Positions 34,923 to 63,512 of a stretch of DNA of 64,000 nt are shown here, piece by piece. A program made the position numbers and the translations under genes. How positions within the stretch are numbered: position 1 is the stretch's first letter; each line of letters opens with the position of its first letter. The notes beneath the pieces are model-generated. The model was not told where the DNA came from. It saw only the letters and a program-made list of their open reading frames with translations, and did no database searches. The stretch is taken from IMG/VR virus record IMGVR_UViG_3300032323_001214, positions 185,607 through 249,606 of that record; one strand, 5' to 3'.

Positions 34923-35711
34923 ATGAACCATTATCAGACATTGGGGGTAGCTAAAAATGCTACCCCTGATGAAATCAAAAAAGCATATCGCAAATTAGCA
35001 AGTCAACATCACCCTGATAAAGGTGGAGACACCTCGACATTTCAAAAAATAGAAGAAGCATATCGTATTCTTTCTGACCCAAATCAACGTCAACAATACG
35101 ACAACCCTCAATCACAATTTCAAGGGTTCGGTGGTGATCCAAACTTTAACGGAGTTAATCTAGGGGACTTGTTCGCACAGATGTTTGGTCATGCAGGGCA
35201 TCCTCAACACAGGCCACAGCAACCCCATGTGTTTAGAACAGTGATACACATAACATTAGAACAAGCTTTTAATGGAGATACCCAAAATGTAAGACTACAA
35301 ACTCCAATGGGTACTCATGCAATAAATGTCAGTGTTCCCAAAGGTATACAGGATGGTGGACAAGTTCGGTATGAAAAGGTCATTGATGGAGCATCATTGA
35401 TGGTTGAATTCAGGATTCAACCGCATTTGAAATATGATAGAAAGCTTAATGATTTATATGCCAATCATTCTATTTCGGTATTGGATTTGATTGTAGGTAC
35501 TACTTTCGAATTTACTACATTATCTGGAAAAACCCTAGAGGTAAAAGTACCACCAAAAACGCAACCATTTATGCAATTAAAAATAGCAGGTCAAGGAATG
35601 CCTATTAATGGTACTACACAGTATGGAGACCAAATAATATTGCTAAAACCCTTCGTACCTGATATTATCAATACTGAAATAACTGAAAGCATTTTGCGTT
35701 CTAAACTATAA
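34923..35711 (+). CDS. dnaJ: DnaJ-class co-chaperone (J domain plus C-terminal domain, no Zn finger)
   Basis: Y.TLGV...A...EIKKAYRKLA..HHPDKGG; G/F region; G.GMP. Confidence 0.9.
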   Translation: MNHYQTLGVAKNATPDEIKKAYRKLASQHHPDKGGDTSTFQKIEEAYRILSDPNQRQQYDNPQSQFQGFGGDPNFNGVNLGDLFAQMFGHAGHPQHRPQQPHVFRTVIHITLEQAFNGDTQNVRLQTPMGTHAINVSVPKGIQDGGQVRYEKVIDGASLMVEFRIQPHLKYDRKLNDLYANHSISVLDLIVGTTFEFTTLSGKTLEVKVPPKTQPFMQLKIAGQGMPINGTTQYGDQIILLKPFVPDIINTEITESILRSKL

Positions 35712-35738: not shown

Positions 35739-38006
35739 GTGAACAATTCACCCGAAATCGAAAGCATCATTGAAGAAGCCATTATTCAGGCAAAAGAGCG
35801 CAGACACCAGTATGTAACTATAGAGCATCTGTTACTGTCATTAATTACACATACTCCTTTCAAAAAATGTTTGGATGGTTTTGGTGCAGATACTGAAAAT
35901 TTAATTAAAGAAGTTGGTGCTTACCTAGATAGTCTACATGCAATTGTAGACAAAACATCTGAGGAAGTTCAACCAAGAAAAACTAATTCACTTGAGCGCA
36001 CAATGAATCGTAGCGTTACTCAGGTGTTGTTTACTGGGCGTAGACAAGTTACTACTATAGACCTGTATCTAAGTATTTCAAGCGAAGGTAATAGCCACGC
36101 ACATTACTATTTGCTAAAATATGGAATTAACAAATCTGAATTTGTTCAGCATTGGCAAAGACATTATAAGGGTGCAGAATTCACTGCTAAGTTATCTGAT
36201 AGCCAAGCTGACGAAATCCTCGAAGAATATACAACAAACTTAACACAACTTGCACGACAGGGCAAACTAGAACCGTTGATCGGTCGTAGTGTTGAAATTG
36301 ATGACATTGTTAATGTATTGGCTAAACGATTTAAGAGTAACGTATTGATGGTTGGTGATCCGGGCGTTGGTAAAACTGCTATTGCAGAAGGTATCGCACA
36401 AAAGATTGTCAATGCAGATGTACCTGAATTCTTAAATGACCATGAAGTCTATAGTCTTGAAGTAGGTGCTCTACTTGCAGGATCAAAATATCGCGGCGAC
36501 TTTGAAGAAAAAGTAAAACAAGTCATTGATGCATTGAATACCAAGAAGAAAGCTATCCTATTCATTGATGAAGCTCACACTATGCAGGGTGCAGGCTCTA
36601 GTAATACTGGTGGACCTGACTTTGCAAATATGATTAAGCCTGCAATTACTAAAGGTACATTGAAAGTTATCGCAAGTACAACTTGGGAAGAATTCTATGA
36701 GTCTTTTGAAAAGGATCGTGCATTGATGCGTAGATTCTATAAAATCTCTATTGATGAACCATCAAATGAAACTACTCAAAGAATCCTTAAAGGCTTGAGC
36801 ACACGTTTAAATGACTTCCATGACGTTAACATCACTGACGAAGCTATTGCATCTGCTGTAGAAAACGCTGCCCGTTACATTCACGATAGAAAGAATCCTG
36901 ATAAGAGTATTGATTTACTTGATGCAGCTTGTGCAAAGCAACGTGTTGCTGGTAATAAAGGAATAGACATTACTAAAGATTTGATCCATGAACAAGTAGA
37001 AAGATACACTGGTGTACCTGCTGACAAACTCAATGGTGATAATTTTTCTCGCATTAATGACCTTGAGTTGAACATCAAGGGGAAATTATATGGTCAAGAT
37101 GAAACAATTGAACAAGTTCTTGAAAGAGTATATGTAAGTTTTGCTGGGATTGGCAATGATAATAAGCCAACTGCTAGCTTTATCTTCTTGGGCCCAACAG
37201 GTACAGGTAAAACAGAATTGGCTAAGTTGTTGAGTAAGAACCTTGACATGCCATTGCTCAAGTACGACATGTCAGAATACGGTGAAAAGCATTCGGTGTC
37301 TAGCTTGATCGGTCCACCCCCTGGTTATGTTGGCTTCGGAGACAGTCAAGTTGGCGGTGGTAGATTGATTAGCGATTTGAGCAAGAATCCTCACAGTATC
37401 TTGTTGTTTGACGAAGTTGAAAAAGCACACCCTGATATCTTTAACATCTTCTTGCAAATGCTTGATGAAGGTCGCATTACAGGATCTAACGGAAAAGAAG
37501 TTAACTGTAAAAATACTATCATTATTATGACTAGTAATTTAGGTTCCAGTGATAGCGAAAGAAACAATATTGGTTTTGGTAATCAAGAAAAAACAGGTGA
37601 AGATGATAAAGCAATTAAAGAATTCTTCAAACCTGAATTCAGAAACCGTGTTGATTTAATTTGTAAATTCAAGAAACTTGATTTGTTGGCTATTAAAAAG
37701 ATTGTAGTCAAGTTCACTGAGGAACTTAAGAAAACACTGATGGACAAACATAATATTAGTTTGAACCTTACTGAGCCGGTAATAGAATACCTAGCTGAGA
37801 ATGGTTATGATAATAAAATGGGAGCACGTCCACTTGCTCGTAAAATTGATGAAATGATTCGAGTTCCTATCTCAAAGAAGATTCTTTTCGAACGCATAAA
37901 AAATGCAACTATCAATGTTACATTAGTAGACGATAAAATCGAGTTTAATTCGGTGCAAAAGCAAACAGCGAGAGTAGGCGAAGATGGGATTATTGAAATC
38001 AGTTGA
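35739..38006 (+). CDS. clpA: ClpA-like Clp ATPase (two AAA+ domains)
   Basis: GDPGVGKT, FIDEAH, GPTGTGKTE, DMSEY, PPGYVG, FDEVEKAH, IGF ClpP-docking loop, MGARP. Confidence 0.9.
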   Translation: MNNSPEIESIIEEAIIQAKERRHQYVTIEHLLLSLITHTPFKKCLDGFGADTENLIKEVGAYLDSLHAIVDKTSEEVQPRKTNSLERTMNRSVTQVLFTGRRQVTTIDLYLSISSEGNSHAHYYLLKYGINKSEFVQHWQRHYKGAEFTAKLSDSQADEILEEYTTNLTQLARQGKLEPLIGRSVEIDDIVNVLAKRFKSNVLMVGDPGVGKTAIAEGIAQKIVNADVPEFLNDHEVYSLEVGALLAGSKYRGDFEEKVKQVIDALNTKKKAILFIDEAHTMQGAGSSNTGGPDFANMIKPAITKGTLKVIASTTWEEFYESFEKDRALMRRFYKISIDEPSNETTQRILKGLSTRLNDFHDVNITDEAIASAVENAARYIHDRKNPDKSIDLLDAACAKQRVAGNKGIDITKDLIHEQVERYTGVPADKLNGDNFSRINDLELNIKGKLYGQDETIEQVLERVYVSFAGIGNDNKPTASFIFLGPTGTGKTELAKLLSKNLDMPLLKYDMSEYGEKHSVSSLIGPPPGYVGFGDSQVGGGRLISDLSKNPHSILLFDEVEKAHPDIFNIFLQMLDEGRITGSNGKEVNCKNTIIIMTSNLGSSDSERNNIGFGNQEKTGEDDKAIKEFFKPEFRNRVDLICKFKKLDLLAIKKIVVKFTEELKKTLMDKHNISLNLTEPVIEYLAENGYDNKMGARPLARKIDEMIRVPISKKILFERIKNATINVTLVDDKIEFNSVQKQTARVGEDGIIEIS

Positions 38007-58256: not shown

Positions 58257-58943
58257 ATGAGTTATAATAAAACAAAAACAGACCCAGAGTTGGGCAAACA
58301 AGTTCACTTACATTTATTGAACATGGGTGTAGAAACACCTATCGATGACACAATTTATTTGGGTGATCGCAAAGAAAGAATTGAAAAGATTGAAGGTCAT
58401 TTCAAAGCCATCATGGAAACAATGGGTCTTGATTTGTCCGATGATAGTCTAATTGAGACACCTAAACGTGTTGCTAAGATGTATATCAATGAAATCTTTT
58501 GGGGGCTTGACTATGAAGCGTTCCCTAAATGTACAACAGTTGACAACAAGATGCAATACAATGAAATGGTTGTAGAGCGTAATGTTAATGTTCAATCTAA
58601 CTGCGAACATCATTTTGTAGTCATTGACGGATTGGCTACTGTAGCTTATGTCCCTAAACAAAAAGTTTTAGGGCTTAGTAAGATTAACCGTATTGTAGAA
58701 TATTTCAGTAAGAGACCTCAAATTCAGGAACGCTTAACAGAGCAAATATTTCACACCTTACAGTTCATCCTTGATACAGAAGATGTTGCAGTTATGATTG
58801 ATGCACAACACTATTGTGTTAAGAGTCGTGGTGTAGAAGATACGGGTAGTAGCACAGTTACTTGTCGCTTAGGTGGCGGATTCAAAACAGATCCTGCGGC
58901 ACGTGCAGAGTTCTTGCAGATTGCCAACAAAGGCTGCAAATGA
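58257..58943 (+). CDS. folE: GTP cyclohydrolase I
   Basis: ETPKRVAKMY, SNCEHHF, GLSKINR, RPQIQERLT, HYCV.SRG. Confidence 0.97.
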   Translation: MSYNKTKTDPELGKQVHLHLLNMGVETPIDDTIYLGDRKERIEKIEGHFKAIMETMGLDLSDDSLIETPKRVAKMYINEIFWGLDYEAFPKCTTVDNKMQYNEMVVERNVNVQSNCEHHFVVIDGLATVAYVPKQKVLGLSKINRIVEYFSKRPQIQERLTEQIFHTLQFILDTEDVAVMIDAQHYCVKSRGVEDTGSSTVTCRLGGGFKTDPAARAEFLQIANKGCK

Positions 58944-59072: not shown

Positions 59073-59312
59073 ATGACAGCCAACGAGGCTAGGGCATTCA
59101 TTCGTAAAGTAATGGGCCCTACTCGAAGAATATTAGAAGGTAATGAGCGTGAACATATGCTTACTGTGTTCAGTTTAGTAGAGCCTATTAATGTTAGCAA
59201 CAACCAAAGGTCATTCACTGAAGAATATGAACATGCAGGTAAGAAATATGATGTTCATTATTTTGAAGACGAGACAATAGTAGAGGAAATATTGCCAGAT
59301 GATTTTCAATAG
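59073..59312 (+). CDS. Hypothetical protein
   Basis: MTANEARAFIRK start right after the previous stop. Confidence 0.6.
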   Translation: MTANEARAFIRKVMGPTRRILEGNEREHMLTVFSLVEPINVSNNQRSFTEEYEHAGKKYDVHYFEDETIVEEILPDDFQ

Positions 59313-59766
59313 GATTAAAGAATTAAAACATCAAGGGCTAAGAATAGGTATAACTTTTAGTCAATTTGATTTATTACACGCAGGACATGTCGCAATGCTT
59401 AGTGAAGCTAAGAATCATTGCGACTATCTCATTTGTGGATTACAAAACAATGCTAGTTGGGATCGTCCTGAAAAGAATGCACCTATTCAAAGTATTGTAG
59501 AAAGACAAATTAGTTTATCTGCCGTTCGATTTGTAGATGAAATCATTATATACAACACAGAGAAGGATCTAGAAGATATTCTACTTACACTTCCAGTTGA
59601 TGTTCGTATACTAGGGGTAGAGTATATGGAAAAAGATTTTACGGGTCGTGCTATCTGTGAGAAGCGAGGTGTTGAATTAGTATTCAACGGACGTGACCAC
59701 AGTTTTAGTAGTTCAAGTCTACGCAAACGTGTAGCAGAAGCTGAACAAAATAAAAGGATACAGTGA
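59299..59766 (+). CDS. Cytidylyltransferase (TagD-like)
   Basis: FDLLHAGH, ER...L.A.RFVDE, R.H.FSSS.LR. Confidence 0.85.
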   Translation: MIFNRIKELKHQGLRIGITFSQFDLLHAGHVAMLSEAKNHCDYLICGLQNNASWDRPEKNAPIQSIVERQISLSAVRFVDEIIIYNTEKDLEDILLTLPVDVRILGVEYMEKDFTGRAICEKRGVELVFNGRDHSFSSSSLRKRVAEAEQNKRIQ

Positions 59767-60065
59767 TGAACAGCTATGATGACTTTCTGAATAGGTTTAG
59801 AGTTCGAAACGTACAAGTATCACGAGACTATGATTACAAAAATTTCAACTATAATTATAATCAGACTGCAAGTTATTACGCTGACCGTGAAGAACTTATC
59901 GATATGCAACTTTCACGAGATGGGTTTGAACAATTGGTCAATGTAGACCGTGAGTATGATTTACTAACCCAAAACCAGCGTGATGAAGCATGGATGCGTA
60001 GACAATACCCGGCGATCAAAGAAGCGTATGAAAAATATTTAATGTTATTGGAGTTATACAGATGA
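59763..60065 (+). CDS. Hypothetical protein
   Basis: 100-aa ORF, coupled. Confidence 0.65.
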   Translation: MMNSYDDFLNRFRVRNVQVSRDYDYKNFNYNYNQTASYYADREELIDMQLSRDGFEQLVNVDREYDLLTQNQRDEAWMRRQYPAIKEAYEKYLMLLELYR

Positions 60066-60853
60066 AACGAATTTTAATTATGGGCTTGCCGGGTGCAGGC
60101 AAAACTTATCTAGCACAACATGTACTAGAACATTTACAAAACGAAAAGAAAAAAGTGGGTTGGCTCAATGCCGATGATGTTCGTAAAAAATACAACGACT
60201 GGGATTTTACTGAAGCAGGACGCATACGTCAAAGTTTACGTATGCGTGAACTAGCAGATGCAATGACCGAGTATGATTATGTTATCTGTGACTTTGTTGC
60301 ACCATTAGTTGAAATGCGTAATAACTTCAAGGCAGATTGGACTGTATGGGTTGACACTATCGACAAAGGTCGATACGAAGATACCAACAAAGCCTTTATT
60401 CCACCAGAAGTCTATGATTTCAGAATCACAGAACAACACGGTGAAAAGTGGGGAGAGTTTATTGCTGCACACATTTTAGATGATAGACGCAGACCAGTAT
60501 TTGATTGGAAAAAAGAAACTGTTCAAATGCTAGGTCGTTGGCAACCATGGCATCAAGGACATCGTAAGTTGTTTGAACGTGCTATTGCTAAAACTGGGCA
60601 AGTTGTTATTCAAATCCGTGACTGTCAAGGATGGCAAGGAAGTAATCCATTTGCTATAGAACAAGTAAAGAATTTTATCAAACGTGATTTAGATATGTTA
60701 TATCAAGGTCAGTATGAGATTCAAATTGTTCCAAATATAGTAAATATTACATATGGACGTGATGTTGGATACAAGATTGAACAAGAAGTGTTTGATGATG
60801 CTACACATAGTATTAGTGCTACCAAAATTCGAAAACAACTGGGGATGCAATGA
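60062..60853 (+). CDS. Adenylylsulfate-kinase-like domain fused to HIGH-family nucleotidyltransferase
   Basis: GLPGAGKT, LNADDVR...DF...GR.RQ..R (CysC-like); GRWQPWHQGH and SISATKIR. Confidence 0.7.
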   Translation: MKRILIMGLPGAGKTYLAQHVLEHLQNEKKKVGWLNADDVRKKYNDWDFTEAGRIRQSLRMRELADAMTEYDYVICDFVAPLVEMRNNFKADWTVWVDTIDKGRYEDTNKAFIPPEVYDFRITEQHGEKWGEFIAAHILDDRRRPVFDWKKETVQMLGRWQPWHQGHRKLFERAIAKTGQVVIQIRDCQGWQGSNPFAIEQVKNFIKRDLDMLYQGQYEIQIVPNIVNITYGRDVGYKIEQEVFDDATHSISATKIRKQLGMQ

Positions 60854-61608
60854 TTGCTCATAGAATCTGTATTATTTGTTTACCTAGAACAGGTAGTCAG
60901 TTATGTGAACAATTAGCTAGTGAGGTAACCTCAGGAATTCAATTGGGTGAGTATTTTGAAAATTGGAATCGTAGCGAATACGTTATACATAATGATAATA
61001 TAAAATTAAAAAATTTTGTGAGTATAGCGTCAAGATTTAAATTGTTTGAAAATTTTCAGGAAAGACTTGATTTATTAAAAAACACAGATATAAATCAGCC
61101 ACTAACTCTGAGAATATTTTTAATGGATCATTATGATAAAACTACATTATCTAATATAATAATAGAACTAAAAAATATAGGTTTTGAATTTATCACATTG
61201 ACAAGAGATATAAAAGAACAATTACTAAGTTACATGATTGCCCGCACATATGAACAAAATATGCAAAATGTGTTTGATATTAATAGCGAAATAAATAAAC
61301 CTGTACATATTAATCTTAATCATTTGAATAGCGTGTTAAATCAAATTTATGTTAGTCATCTGTTATGGGAAAAAAATCTGTCTATACTATTACAAAATAT
61401 TGAATACCAAAAAGTAAAATATGAATCTATCTATTCGGACATGGAAAAAATCTATAATACAAAATTCAAATATTTGGGAGAAAAATCTATAAAAACTGAT
61501 CCATTTGATTTAATTACCAATAAAGAAGAAGTTATGCGTTTTTTATCAAATAAAATAAGCGGTCTTGGCGTCATTCCCGCTTTACAAACTCTGCCGCCTG
61601 TGCTATAA
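60850..61608 (+). CDS. Sulfotransferase-like protein
   Basis: LPRTGS 5'-PSB-like loop, E.F, I.LTR....Q.LS, V.YE; very AT-rich. Confidence 0.55.
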   Translation: MIAHRICIICLPRTGSQLCEQLASEVTSGIQLGEYFENWNRSEYVIHNDNIKLKNFVSIASRFKLFENFQERLDLLKNTDINQPLTLRIFLMDHYDKTTLSNIIIELKNIGFEFITLTRDIKEQLLSYMIARTYEQNMQNVFDINSEINKPVHINLNHLNSVLNQIYVSHLLWEKNLSILLQNIEYQKVKYESIYSDMEKIYNTKFKYLGEKSIKTDPFDLITNKEEVMRFLSNKISGLGVIPALQTLPPVL

Positions 61609-61620
61609 TTAACATAGGAG
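61557..61620 (+). ncRNA. Candidate preQ1-I-like riboswitch / structured leader of queD
   Basis: AAGCGG/CCGCTT stem, 14-nt loop, A-rich linker, loop GGCG complementary to downstream CGCC, CCTGTG/CATAGG hairpin over the SD. Confidence 0.45.
61581..61609 (+). promoter_or_regulatory. Possible sigma70-type promoter overlapping the queD leader
   Basis: TTTACA-17 nt-TATAAT with TG extension. Confidence 0.55.
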
Positions 61621-61626
61621 AAAAAC

Positions 61627-62154
61627 ATGGCAAAATATCTTTCAACAAAAACTTACGGTAACGACAGGGGTCTGAGTTGCTGTTTTAGACAATGGCGAAG
61701 TACACATAGTCATTGCAGTTTGTTACATGGATACTCAATTGGTATCAAACTAATCTTTGAATCAGAAACACTAGACGACCGCAACTGGGTTATGGACTTT
61801 GGTGGACTCAAAGCATTTAAAGAATGGGCTGATTGGCAATTCGATCACACAATGGTCATCGCTAAAGATGATCCTGAGCGTGGTACGTTTATAGAACTAA
61901 ACAAAATACAAGGCGGCTTCAAAAACATGGGAATTATTGATCTACGTATTGTAGATGGCGTAGGATGTGAAAAATTTGCAGAACTAGTTTACAAAACTAT
62001 GAATGAAATCTTGGGTGCATACCAAGCAGGTATAGGTTGGATACATCCAGATGGTAGAATCTTTGAAGCACGTTATCCAGTGGGACAAGGTGTTCACCTA
62101 CGTTCAGCAGAAGTGTTTGAACATGCTGGTAACTCAGCAGTTTACGAAGGATAA
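61627..62154 (+). CDS. queD: 6-carboxytetrahydropterin synthase
   Basis: SHCSLLHGYS, WVMDFGGLK, FDH, CE.FAE, V.EH..NSA.Y. Confidence 0.9.
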   Translation: MAKYLSTKTYGNDRGLSCCFRQWRSTHSHCSLLHGYSIGIKLIFESETLDDRNWVMDFGGLKAFKEWADWQFDHTMVIAKDDPERGTFIELNKIQGGFKNMGIIDLRIVDGVGCEKFAELVYKTMNEILGAYQAGIGWIHPDGRIFEARYPVGQGVHLRSAEVFEHAGNSAVYEG

Positions 62155-62155
62155 T

Positions 62156-62812
62156 ATGTTAGAAACAATTTGCGACACACTAGTTGAAGCATACAGACGC
62201 AACTGGATAACCAGTCGTGATGGCAATGTAAGTATTCGTCATCACGACCGTGATCACTTTTATATCACACCTAGTGGCGTCCGTAAGCAAACTATGCAAC
62301 CTGATCAGTTCAAGAAGATCAGCATTGACAAAAGTATACACAGTGGCTTTGGTTCTGCCGCTTTTAACTATAGCTGGCAAGACTTGCCGTATACCGATAT
62401 CAGTGCTAATCTAAAGCCTAGTGGAGAGATTCCATTGCATTTTGGACTTCAGCGTGAAATGGGTCAACATAAAAACGATGTTCGTGTAGTGGTACACTTG
62501 CATCCTACTTACTGTGTTGCCGCTATGCATCGCGGTATTGAATTGAGCAGTCTTGCCAATGACTTTCCTGAACTTAGTCGCTACACAAAAGTAGCGCCTA
62601 ACGTAGGAGATGTACCACCTATAAGTCAAGAACTTGCCGATCGGTGTCATGAAAATCTACAGTTAGATGATTGCGGTAATGTTAAATATGATATTGTCGG
62701 TATCAAGGGTCACGGAGTAGTTGCTATTGATACTAGTCCATGGCGAGCCTTTGAACATATTGAACGATTAGAACATATTTGTCAAATTGTATTGGCATCA
62801 GGAAAATATTAA
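62156..62812 (+). CDS. Class II aldolase / adducin family protein
   Basis: DGNVSIR, ITPSG, PSGE..LH, VVHLHP, GHGVVA. Confidence 0.9.
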   Translation: MLETICDTLVEAYRRNWITSRDGNVSIRHHDRDHFYITPSGVRKQTMQPDQFKKISIDKSIHSGFGSAAFNYSWQDLPYTDISANLKPSGEIPLHFGLQREMGQHKNDVRVVVHLHPTYCVAAMHRGIELSSLANDFPELSRYTKVAPNVGDVPPISQELADRCHENLQLDDCGNVKYDIVGIKGHGVVAIDTSPWRAFEHIERLEHICQIVLASGKY

Positions 62813-62822
62813 GGAGAAAATT

Positions 62823-63512
62823 ATGATTGAAACAACTTATGAAAATGGAACGTCATATCGTTCTGCTAGTGAACTTAATTCAGCAATGGGTCGTGTCTAC
62901 GGGCATATGAGCCTTGCTGTTATTGTATCAATGTTTGTCAGTTACTTTGTGGGAACTAGCCCAGAGTTGCTGGCATTCTTTTTTACAGGCGTTATGAAGT
63001 GGATTGTGATATTTGCACCACTAGCGGCGATCTTTGGTGTTAGCTATGTACTAGGCAATAATCCCAGTAAGAGTGTAGCACAGTTATGCCTGCATGGATT
63101 TGCAGCATTGATGGGATTGAGTTTTGCTACAATATTTGCCATATTCAATATGGGCAGTATAGTTAGTGCATTTATGGGTGCTGCTATCTTGTTTGCTATA
63201 ATGAGTGTATATGGATACTTTACTAAACAAAGTTTAGACAGTGTTGGCAAGTTTATGTTTGTAGGATTAATTGCTATCATTATTGCCAGTATTGTTAACA
63301 TCTTTATTGGTAGTACTGTAATGCAAATGGTCATTAGTGCATTAGCTATTATTATCTTCCTTGGACTAACAGCTTATGATACGCAAAAGATTCGAGAAGA
63401 ACTCAGTGTAGAAGCCAGTGATGTTGCTGAAGTCCGTGGCGCACTAACATTGTATATGGACTTTATCAACTTGTTCATTAACCTGTTACAACTTTTTGGC
63501 GATAGAAAATAA
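62823..63512 (+). CDS. Bax inhibitor-1 / YccA family membrane protein
   Basis: Seven hydrophobic segments; LTAYDTQKI and AL.LY.DFINLF..LL. Confidence 0.9.
   Translation: MIETTYENGTSYRSASELNSAMGRVYGHMSLAVIVSMFVSYFVGTSPELLAFFFTGVMKWIVIFAPLAAIFGVSYVLGNNPSKSVAQLCLHGFAALMGLSFATIFAIFNMGSIVSAFMGAAILFAIMSVYGYFTKQSLDSVGKFMFVGLIAIIIASIVNIFIGSTVMQMVISALAIIIFLGLTAYDTQKIREELSVEASDVAEVRGALTLYMDFINLFINLLQLFGDRK

Follow-up and report, generated by a model that had tools for sequence, protein, structure and literature searches.

The gene encoding a QueD-like protein of an uncultured phage, a gene for making 7-deazaguanine precursors, is preceded by a GC-rich stretch that can fold into a small pseudoknot, and the question addressed here is whether this stretch is a regulatory RNA and, if so, of which kind. 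The DNA analysed (the window) comprises 64,000 nucleotides of the IMG/VR record IMGVR_UViG_3300032323_001214 (positions 185,607 to 249,606), and all coordinates refer to it. In the initial annotation, made from the sequence alone, the stretch was described as a pseudoknot resembling the class I preQ1 (preQ1-I) riboswitch, with a hairpin that blocks the Shine-Dalgarno (SD) sequence, directly upstream of queD. That observation proved to be exact in every position and letter. The stretch has 54% G+C as compared with about 34% for its surroundings, and the features are listed in Table 1.

Table 1. Features of the queD leader and its surroundings in the window.
Coordinates	Strand	Feature	Sequence and observations
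61557..61582	+	P1 hairpin with the additional sixth pair	AAGCGG (61557-62) pairs with CCGCTT (61577-82), encloses loop TCTTGGCGTCATTC and is followed by TACAAAC; pair A61557-U61582 is possible in the window alone
61558..61562	+	P1 5' strand	AGCGG; pairs with 61577-61581; 3 of the 5 pairs show changes on both sides in relatives
61563..61566	+	L1	UCUU; family pattern N-C-U followed by 0-9 further bases; C and U at positions 2-3 invariant in the alignment of queD-anchored leaders, with deviations in a few hits of the covariance model
61567..61570	+	P2 5' strand, in the hairpin loop	GGCG; complementary to 61595-61598 and, with one G-U, to TGCC 61592-95
61571..61576	+	L2	UCAUUC; ends in invariant C61576 immediately 5' of the P1 3' strand, the position of the class I preQ1 'specificity' cytosine
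61577..61581	+	P1 3' strand	CCGCU
61582..61594	+	L3	UUACAAAC plus invariant UCUGC; invariant A at positions 3, 5 and 7
61595..61598	+	P2 3' strand	CGCC; also part of the anti-RBS strand; overlaps P3 by C61597 and C61598
61597..61618	+	P3 hairpin	CCUGUG (61597-602) pairs with CAUAGG (61613-18), loop CUAUAAUUAA; covers AGG of the SD; predicted in the MFE fold and in the consensus fold of 42 window-type leaders
61592..61632	+	Outer extension of the RBS-sequestering fold	UGCCG (61592-96) pairs with UGGCA (61628-32), the UG of the start codon plus the GCA codon; MFE fold of the window leader; analogous pairing with the start codon is the consensus in the other two platform types
61616..61629	+	SD and start codon of the queD-like gene	AGGAG (61616-20) and ATG (61627-29)
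61581..61609	+	Sigma70-like promoter within L3, the P2 3' strand and the P3 loop	TTTACA(61581)-17-TGcTATAAT(61609); 11 of 12 positions matched, best site in 58-64 kb; transcripts starting from it would lack the aptamer
61627..62154	+	QueD-like 6-pyruvoyl-tetrahydropterin synthase (PTPS) family gene, 175 aa	Pfam PTPS 6.3e-13; PHROG 2389 'QueD-like' 1.9e-32; 45.6% identical (tblastn) to QueD of Pseudomonas phage Iggy, which lies in a QueE-QueC-QueD-FolE-DpdA cluster
60850..61608	+	Orphan ORF, 252 aa	Last 17 or so codons run through the aptamer; no Pfam or PHROG family, no phage tblastn hit, no homolog in any of about 165 related loci
58257..58943	+	GTP cyclohydrolase I (FolE), first enzyme of the same pathway	Pfam 1.1e-61; upstream of, and outside, the regulated unit; within 3 kb upstream of the element in 49 related loci

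Taken alone, the sequence does not fold better than expected by chance: the MFE is -19.0 kcal/mol with z = -1.53, and 11 of 200 shuffled sequences fold as well. The significance comes from comparison, as the same architecture recurs with compensatory changes in more than 250 related loci on uncultured freshwater phage contigs. A covariance model built from relatives matched the window once, at 61556-61605 (54.6 bits, E about 1.5e-17), and nowhere else in the 64 kb. The element, of roughly 50 nt, is found once per locus.

Both helices covary. P1 occurs as AGCGG/CCGCU, AGAGG/CCUCU, AGUGG/CCACU, UGCGG/CCGCA and ACCGG/CCGGU, and P2, which links the loop and the tail, as GGCG/CGCC, GGUG/CACC, GGCU/AGCC, GGCA/UGCC, GACGU/AUGUC and GACUGU/ACAGUC. 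Hence, of the two registers proposed for P2 in the initial annotation, covariation supports GGCG/CGCC. In 46 distinct leaders, P1 was 100% paired and 5 of 7 P2 pairs were changed on both sides. In 94 distinct aptamers, P1 was 99.4% and P2 81.6% paired, none of 500 shuffles reached the observed values, and slid controls gave 34-58%. The result held on an independent sample of 101 hits aligned by a model of P1 only, in which P1 was 98.7% paired, the P2 core pairs were 86-99% paired, 8 of 11 pairs showed changes on both sides, and again none of 500 shuffles reached the observed values. Absence of conservation or covariation in related queD leaders had been named beforehand as grounds for rejecting the element, and the outcome was strongly the opposite. 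P2 contains many G-U pairs, which would be C-A mismatches on the other strand, and this indicates an RNA on the + strand.

These data bear on the possibility that what matters in the window is at the DNA level, namely a sigma70 promoter for queD together with the coding 3' end of the upstream ORF, the hairpins being due to chance. Both the overlapping promoter-like site and the ORF that reads through the structure, given as caveats in the initial annotation, are real, and the fold of the single sequence is not significant. However, covariation in two crossing helices with G-U pairs cannot be explained at the DNA or protein-coding level. The ORF is an insertion specific to this genome and is absent from all relatives examined, which retain the element; in two related loci, L001 and L103, the kinase gene (93% identical) ends 12 nt before the aptamer. 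The -35-like ACA in L3 and the TATAAT-like loop co-occur only in leaders of the window's platform type (see below), whereas leaders of the other two types, A and C, lack the internal promoter and place the element downstream of a promoter. This explanation is therefore refuted as the sole one, though the predicted promoter may co-exist with the RNA element in the window type, where it could produce queD transcripts that bypass the element. A terminator or attenuator reading of P1 was also rejected, as there is no U-tract after P1, no terminator-like site on this strand was found, and in types A and C the element follows a promoter directly.

Sigma70-type promoters end 6-9 nt before P1 in types C and A. 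A phage heptamer, ATAA[AG]TA, lies 4-12 nt before P1 in most of the 40 of 101 leaders that carry it within 30 nt, and it is enriched before the element and before ORF starts. In contrast, the T4-type late promoter TATAAATA is not enriched in the window, with 2 sites against 8.4 expected. In the window, no recognisable promoter lies just upstream of the element because the orphan ORF was inserted there. Public metatranscriptomes yielded only contigs of relatives that cover the leader; these gave no transcript ends and may derive from DNA.

The element is followed in nearly all cases by a PTPS/QueD-family gene of at least five divergent subfamilies, and QueE and the preQ0/preQ1 transporter family YhhQ (PF02592) are often next. 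A scan of genome contigs for bacterial copies gave 5 true hits, all of which are on phage-like contigs binned into MAGs and precede queD-like genes; three further hits were chance matches in GC-rich coding DNA. The covariance model found no copy in the que cluster of phage Iggy. Among cultured phages (INPHARED), no nucleotide relative of the region, no homolog of the 252-aa ORF and no blastn match to the aptamer of the window type or type A were found, and no cultured host system was identified. The element has been found only on phage-like contigs, which include jumbo contigs of 281-382 kb.

The relation to the preQ1 riboswitches was examined next. Searches with Rfam models at gathering and permissive thresholds, on the window and 21 loci, found no preQ1 family: at the gathering score there was no match to preQ1-I (RF00522), preQ1-II or preQ1-III in the window or in 20 related loci, and there was none at E<=10 on 351-nt and 131-nt stretches. 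The E. coli K-12 yhhQ leader, intended as a positive control for RF00522, also gave no hit, but the published type III 'Eco' element is evidently not in that leader (PMC10622847), and the control therefore says nothing on the sensitivity of the model. The only nearby hit was freshwater-2 (RF02980) at 18 bits (E = 1.6), which aligns mainly the SD and AUG and is regarded as chance.

The resemblance to class I preQ1 aptamers, as described in PMC11625349 and PMC10622847, is nevertheless specific. Both are H-type pseudoknots with a 5-bp P1 closed by a conserved G-C pair and a P2 formed between the hairpin loop and the 3' tail, and both are linked to queuosine-precursor genes, including yhhQ, which is controlled by type III of class I. 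The cytosine immediately 5' of the P1 3' strand is invariant in queD-anchored leaders. It is preceded by U in about 75%, C in about 15% and A in about 9% of copies, of which those with C fall outside the rule of U (type I) or A (types II and III) at this position. L3 is A-rich, and its positions 4 and 6 track whether the middle P1 pair is of the G-C or A-U type, without distinguishing A-U from U-A, in 197 of 200 distinct sequences. This is the behaviour expected of minor-groove triples if L3 docks on P1; however, L3 has 13 nt (NNANANAY-UCUGC) with alternating rather than contiguous A's, and the invariant UCUGC at its end is lacking in class I.

Further differences from class I are the size of the aptamer (about 48-56 nt, against about 34 nt), a P2 of 4-7 bp, and L1. 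Class I has a conserved U or UU at the start of L1 that contacts the ligand, whereas the first L1 base here is variable (U 71, C 65 and A 64 of 200) and is followed by a conserved C-U; the U at L1 position 3 might substitute. The preQ1-II and preQ1-III riboswitches share the pathway association, are pseudoknotted and use a cytosine to read the ligand, but they have a different (HLout) topology and a larger size, bury the SD and are OFF switches. Other small H-type pseudoknot riboswitches (SAM-II/SAM-V and guanidine-III) are of similar size, share the H-type fold with loop-groove triples and control translation, but their consensus sequences are unrelated, they sit next to different genes, and no Rfam hit to them was obtained.

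In class I the P2 3' strand contains SD bases, so that ligand binding represses expression. In the present element, the P2 3' strand lies 18-40 nt upstream of the SD and is complementary to the SD or start codon. One aptamer is joined to three different expression platforms, and in all three the P2 3' strand can pair with the RBS or start codon, so that P2 and P3 compete for the same strand. Type C uses UGYCAUUG/CAAUGGCA, type A uses GYCRUC/GAUGGC and the window type uses CCUAUG/CAUAGG, with the compensatory variants CCUAUA/UAUAGG and CCUUAU/AUAAGG in relatives. Blocking the P2 strands in silico removed 1.3-9.7 kcal/mol (median about 5) of RBS-sequestering structure and left no strong conserved alternative. 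The wiring thus predicts an ON switch, i.e. logic opposite to that of class I. However, this inference rests on nearest-neighbour energies that cannot model the pseudoknot, and in some type C leaders a 6-bp remnant of P3 could stack on P2 and give OFF logic instead. ON logic is also unusual for a biosynthetic gene, and preQ1 riboswitches are described only as repressing in the review consulted (PMC11625349).

A constitutive structural element without sensor function, which would simply keep the RBS open, set mRNA stability or act as a ribosome standby or enhancer site, with P3 an incidental alternative fold, is considered unlikely. P3 is weak in type A (6 bp with G-U pairs and a loop of about 37 nt), where the pseudoknot might dominate without any ligand. 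On the other hand, an anti-RBS strand overlapping the P2 3' strand has been maintained with compensatory changes in three unrelated platform designs, which argues that the alternative fold is under selection, and P3 of type C is strong (8-10 bp; -13 to -18 kcal/mol for the leader).

It is also unlikely, though slightly less so, that the pseudoknot is a translational operator for a phage or host protein, such as QueD itself, a RegA-like repressor or ribosomal protein S1, which would bind the conserved loops and shift the balance between P2 and P3. The precedent is the pseudoknot in the T4 gene 32 leader that nucleates autoregulation, likewise a phage 5' leader pseudoknot placed before an RBS that controls translation. 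That operator works through cooperative binding of a single-stranded nucleic acid binding protein, and has no conserved pocket-like loops and no link to a metabolic gene. The invariant unpaired bases (UCUGC, N-C-U and A.A.A) could equally be a protein-recognition surface, the strict linkage to one gene family fits an autoregulatory operator as well as an aptamer, and the phages are large myoviruses with many unknown genes. However, the RNA core stays nearly constant while the downstream proteins belong to at least five divergent PTPS subfamilies, which is hard to reconcile with co-evolving autoregulation. In addition, the conserved bases sit where class I preQ1 aptamers contact ligand (PMC11625349), and one aptamer joined to three interchangeable platforms is the classic riboswitch pattern.

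The analysis thus indicates that window 61556-61629 is the 5' leader of a phage queD-like gene and carries a conserved cis-regulatory RNA, which is shown to be an H-type pseudoknot followed by a platform in which the P2 3' strand and its neighbouring bases can pair instead with the SD and start codon. The RNA is genuine and riboswitch-like, and it looks like a relative of the preQ1-I riboswitch. That it is a riboswitch, with the ligand binding and translational control this entails, is inferred, with a probability of about 0.6. In this view, a small molecule bound at the P1/P2 junction would lock the pseudoknot and withhold the anti-RBS strand, so that the ribosome-binding site stays open and QueD is translated, along with downstream QueE or YhhQ where they are present; without ligand, the more stable P3 would form and translation would be off. 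By analogy with class I aptamers, the ligand most likely has a guanine-like Watson-Crick face read by C61576. The leading candidates are the 7-deazaguanine intermediates preQ0, CDG or preQ1, whereas a pterin or guanine compound such as the QueD substrate would fit ON logic better.

The interpretation in the initial annotation, a phage riboswitch variant sensing preQ0/preQ1 or another pathway intermediate to tune the supply of DNA-modification precursors, is therefore supported only in part. The pseudoknot, the SD-covering hairpin before queD and the class I resemblance were upheld, but membership in Rfam preQ1-I, II or III was not supported, and a role in DNA modification is not shown. Searches by tblastn with proteins of phage Iggy found no DpdA or QueC in the window and no DpdA and almost no QueC within the 3-14 kb around about 280 loci, and a Pfam search of 10 further window ORFs found no TGT-like or QueC domain, though divergent DpdA families could have been missed.

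A further reading, which is possible but judged less likely than not, is that of a distinct, so far phage-only riboswitch class that re-uses a preQ1-I-like pocket as a translational ON switch for a ligand other than preQ1, i.e. a 7-deazaguanine pathway intermediate such as CDG or preQ0, the pterin substrate of QueD, or guanine released during DNA modification. Through it, jumbo freshwater phages would time the supply of 7-deazaguanine precursors.

Riboswitches encoded by phages are rare, and no description was found of one that governs the 7-deazaguanine (queD/queE/yhhQ) genes that many phages carry. The element is abundant: in addition to the more than 250 distinct environmental phage loci, nearly 600 or more confirmed QueD relatives per query were found. 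It is small enough for direct biochemistry and crystallography, offers a natural experiment in how a class I-like pocket can be rewired from OFF to ON, and would add a compact ON switch to the toolbox for synthetic biology. Identification of its ligand would show which intermediate these phages monitor, and would help to say what their FolE-QueD-QueE modules, near which no DpdA and almost no QueC was found, actually make.

[quoted passage not shown] The stretch has 54% G+C in a region of about 34%. The two caveats raised in the initial annotation also hold, as the sigma70-like site overlapping the structure is the best such site between 58 and 64 kb, and the upstream ORF does read through the structure. 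Considered alone, the fold is unremarkable (-19.0 kcal/mol, z = -1.53).

Coordinates of features in the window and, where indicated, in other loci
Feature	Coordinates	Sequence or remark
P1, 5' strand	61557-62	AAGCGG
P1, 3' strand	61577-82	CCGCTT
P2, strand in the P1 loop	61567-70	GGCG
P2, 3' strand	61595-98	CGCC
P3, 5' strand	61597-602	CCTGTG
P3, 3' strand	61613-18	CATAGG
Shine-Dalgarno sequence	61616-20	AGGAG
ATG of the 175-aa ORF	61627	
Additional pairing in the MFE fold, 5' strand	61592-96	UGCCG
Additional pairing in the MFE fold, 3' strand	61628-32	UGGCA
Sigma70-like site	61581-61609	TTTACA-17-TGcTATAAT
252-aa orphan ORF reading through the structure	60850-61608	
Weak match to freshwater-2 (RF02980)	61539-61629	
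Cytidylyltransferase-like gene	59299-59766	PHROG 'heptose 1-phosphate adenylyltransferase'-like
APS-kinase-like P-loop fused to a cytidylyltransferase	60062-60853	
Class II aldolase/adducin-family gene	62156-62812	
Bax1-I/YccA-like membrane protein gene	62823-63512	
DnaJ gene	34923-35711	J domain plus C-terminal domain
Clp/AAA+ 'ATP-dependent protease' family gene	35739-38006	755 aa
Heptamer ATAA[AG]TA, examples on the + strand	3607, 6115, 12083, 13938, 14778, 15530, 16026, 19366, 33100, 35711, 42686, 44443, 48645, 58191	
Canonical QueD gene after the aptamer, related locus L055	L055:2576-2998	141 aa
YhhQ/Vut_1 family transporter gene, related locus L123	L123:3525-4145	
Degenerate second aptamer copy, related locus L176	L176:6-56	24 bits
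Intact aptamer copy, related locus L176	L176:1000-1051	
E. coli K-12 yhhQ leader	L290:9000-9260	

The window is part of a large myovirus-like phage genome carrying tail sheath genes, a family B DNA polymerase, a clamp-loader-like ATPase, and a DnaJ gene next to that of a Clp-like protease. No close relative exists among 50,697 deposited phage genomes, and only freshwater metagenomes hold this sequence. The gene downstream of the element belongs to the PTPS/QueD family, as judged by matches to Pfam PTPS (6.3e-13) and PHROG 'QueD-like' (1.9e-32) and by 45.6% identity (tblastn) to the QueD of Pseudomonas phage Iggy, which lies in a QueE-QueC-QueD-FolE-DpdA cluster. GTP cyclohydrolase I (FolE) is encoded 2.7 kb upstream. 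QueE, QueC and DpdA are not detectable in the 64 kb; in close relatives QueE lies 0-3 kb downstream of queD, which in the window would be just past its end. The cytidylyltransferase-like gene and the kinase/cytidylyltransferase fusion gene sit between FolE and the queD leader and are syntenic in 21 and 7 related loci, respectively. They might belong to the same pathway, for example by nucleotide activation of an intermediate. The aldolase/adducin-family and Bax1-I/YccA-like genes follow queD in the window, but in related loci L033 and L078 the Bax1-I gene instead precedes queD directly and the aptamer is absent.

Related loci were collected by similarity of the QueD protein, not of the RNA. 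The first set comprised 80 IMG/VR loci at 72–95% identity, and the second 80 loci obtained with a divergent QueD as query. The stretch of about 80 nt before the start codon is conserved in 74 of the first 80 loci and in 71 of the second 80, with one copy per locus. In locus L176, however, a second, degenerate copy lies about 1 kb upstream of the intact one. A pattern scan of species-representative genomes gave 5 true hits, all on small or phage-like contigs binned into MAGs and all preceding queD-like genes. A pattern scan of IMG/VR gave at least 113 more. In all, 200 distinct aptamer-plus-platform sequences were obtained. No cultured phage was found to carry the element.

P1 covaries at three of its five pairs, with the forms AGCGG/CCGCU, AGAGG/CCUCU, AGUGG/CCACU, UGCGG/CCGCA and ACCGG/CCGGU, plus AGUCG/CGACU in related locus L169, and is 99.4% paired in 94 distinct sequences. 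The loop-tail helix P2 covaries at five of six pairs, with forms that include GGCAU/AUGCC, GGCAU/AUGUC, GACGU/AUGUC, GACGC/GUGUC, GACAU/AUGUC, GACUU/AAGUC, GACUGU/ACAGUC, GGCG/CGCC, GGUG/CACC, GGCU/AGCC and GGCA/UGCC. None of 500 column shuffles reached the observed pairing or covariation, and sliding the 3' partner by 1-3 columns reduced pairing from 90% to 34-58%. The many G-U pairs place the structure in RNA of the + strand. In an out-of-sample test, 101 hits from the pattern-fetched loci were aligned with a covariance model that knows only P1, and P2 was then counted. The result was the same: P1 was 98.7% paired, P2 core pairs were 86-99% paired, 8 of 11 pairs showed changes on both sides, and 0 of 500 shuffles reached the observed values. 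P1 variants occur across all platform types, so the changes are not a single inherited event. Thus, absence of conservation or covariation in related queD leaders, which had been set beforehand as a ground for rejecting the riboswitch proposal, was not observed.

The pattern-fetched set was selected for GG/CC, CCC, A.A.A and UCUGC, and the invariance of these bases should therefore be read only from the protein-anchored alignment. There, the invariant features are G4, G6, G7, the L1 C-U, the CCC, the three L3 A's, UCU.C and two P2 positions. Mutual information revealed a further, tertiary signal. When the middle P1 pair is C-G, L3 reads A-Y-A-A-A, and when it is A-U or U-A, L3 reads A-A-A-Y-A, which holds in 197 of 200 sequences. 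Sensitivity to the class of the pair, but not to its orientation, is what minor-groove docking of L3 on P1 would produce, although lineage effects cannot be fully excluded.

In type C leaders and many type A leaders, a near-consensus TTGACn-16/17-TATAAT promoter ends 6-9 nt before P1. In window-type leaders and the remaining type A leaders, the heptamer ATAA[AG]TA lies before P1. It occurs within 30 nt upstream in 40 of 101 leaders, mostly 4-12 nt before P1, against 0.008 expected per 30 nt, and is about 47-fold enriched just upstream of the aptamer in relatives. In the window the heptamer occurs 26 times on the + strand and 10 times on the - strand and often lies 10-60 nt before ORF starts; hence, it is probably a promoter element of this phage group. 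The full T4 late consensus TATAAATA is not enriched. Either way, the element begins at or near the 5' end of the mRNA, as inferred from these upstream signals. Freshwater metatranscriptome contigs of relatives do span the leader and queD, but they give no 5' ends and may contain DNA. In the window itself the upstream signal is missing, because the orphan ORF, which has no Pfam, PHROG or phage homolog, has been inserted between the kinase/cytidylyltransferase gene and the element and removed whatever promoter signal preceded the aptamer in relatives. In related loci L001 and L103 that gene, 93% identical, ends 12 nt before P1, and no related locus has the ORF. The reading-through of the ORF is therefore an accident of the insertion and not evidence of protein-coding constraint.

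Three expression platforms follow the same aptamer. In the window type, CCUAUG/CAUAGG covers the SD, with the compensatory forms CCUAUA/UAUAGG and CCUUAU/AUAAGG, and the window has CCUGUG with a G-U pair. The first two C's are the last two bases of the P2 3' strand, and the MFE fold of the window includes an additional pairing that extends beyond P3. In type A, G(U/C)C(A/G)UC pairs with GAUGGC, that is, with the start codon. In type C, UG(U/C)CAUUG(UU) pairs with (AA)CAAUGGCA, giving 8-10 bp over the start codon. In every case the strand that sequesters the RBS contains the P2 3' strand, so P2 and P3 cannot form together. Blocking the P2 strands removes 1.3-9.7 kcal/mol (median about 5) of RBS-sequestering structure and leaves no strong conserved alternative. 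The simplest reading is that the pseudoknot is the ON state and P3 the OFF state, and that a ligand stabilising the P1/P2 junction would activate translation. This is inferred from nearest-neighbour energies without pseudoknot terms, and since in some type C leaders a 6-bp remnant of P3 could stack on P2, OFF logic is not excluded. An ON-type switch is only somewhat more likely than not.

The -35-like (T)TACA in L3 and the TATAAT-like P3 loop co-occur only in the window's platform type. This suggests a real second promoter there, whose transcripts would bypass the aptamer. However, this internal promoter cannot explain the element, because types A and C lack it and the helices covary as RNA.

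Class I preQ1 riboswitches are H-type pseudoknots in which a cytosine directly before the P1 3' strand, preceded by U or A, pairs with the ligand, a conserved G closes P1, a U in L1 and an A in the A-rich L3 complete the pocket, and L3 adenines line the P1 minor groove (PMC11625349). Type III controls yhhQ (PMC10622847). The phage element shares the topology, the cytosine, the closing G-C pair, an A-rich L3 coupled to P1, and the gene neighbourhood. On the other hand, L1 starts with a variable base, L3 is 13 nt with a UCUGC of which UCU.C is invariant in the protein-anchored alignment, the aptamer is about 50 nt, and the P2 3' strand is an anti-RBS strand rather than the SD. No Rfam model scores the element, although the preQ1 model could not be validated on a known example: the E. 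coli K-12 yhhQ leader gave no Rfam preQ1 hit even at E<=10, and K-12 apparently lacks such a riboswitch there, although type III preQ1-I riboswitches are reported to control yhhQ in gamma-proteobacteria. A weak match to the freshwater-2 motif (RF02980; 18.2 bits against a gathering score of 49.9; E = 1.6) aligns a GCGG/CCGC hairpin and the AAGGAGAAAA..AUG stretch. It was judged to be due to chance, but that motif also comes from freshwater metagenomes. No paper in the literature searched describes a riboswitch before phage queD or together with dpdA.

The element is therefore not assigned to preQ1-I; it probably works like a class I aptamer, but with inverted output. Hence, the proposal in the initial annotation of a preQ1-I-like phage riboswitch variant is supported in part. 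The comparative data show a conserved pseudoknotted RNA in which P2 and the RBS-sequestering helix draw on the same strand, whereas ligand binding, the direction of switching and the activity of the internal promoter are inferred from sequence alone. That this is a real, conserved, pseudoknotted cis-regulatory RNA is held with high confidence, and that it is a metabolite-sensing riboswitch has a probability of roughly 0.65. Identification of the ligand as a 7-deazaguanine-type compound is tentative, being slightly less likely than not.

The gene immediately downstream of the element is a PTPS/QueD-family gene in nearly all distinct cases. The subfamilies are the 175-aa and 168-aa FRQWR types, a 149-aa FRQPN type, a 195-aa type, and the canonical CxxxHGH QueD, which is followed by the 175-aa QueD-like gene in related loci L055, L163 and L279. 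In the latter gene the motif reads CxxxHGY and the first zinc histidine seems to be replaced, and the two may therefore not be redundant enzymes. A gene for a phage-encoded transporter of the YhhQ/Vut_1 family (PF02592), the bacterial preQ0/preQ1 importer family, follows queD directly in 11 + 5 loci, L123 among them. QueE is nearby in about 46 + 38 loci and FolE in about 49 + 43, whereas with Iggy proteins as queries QueC was found in only 3 loci and DpdA in none, and the end use may be either DNA or tRNA modification. The regulated unit is thus early 7-deazaguanine precursor synthesis and uptake.
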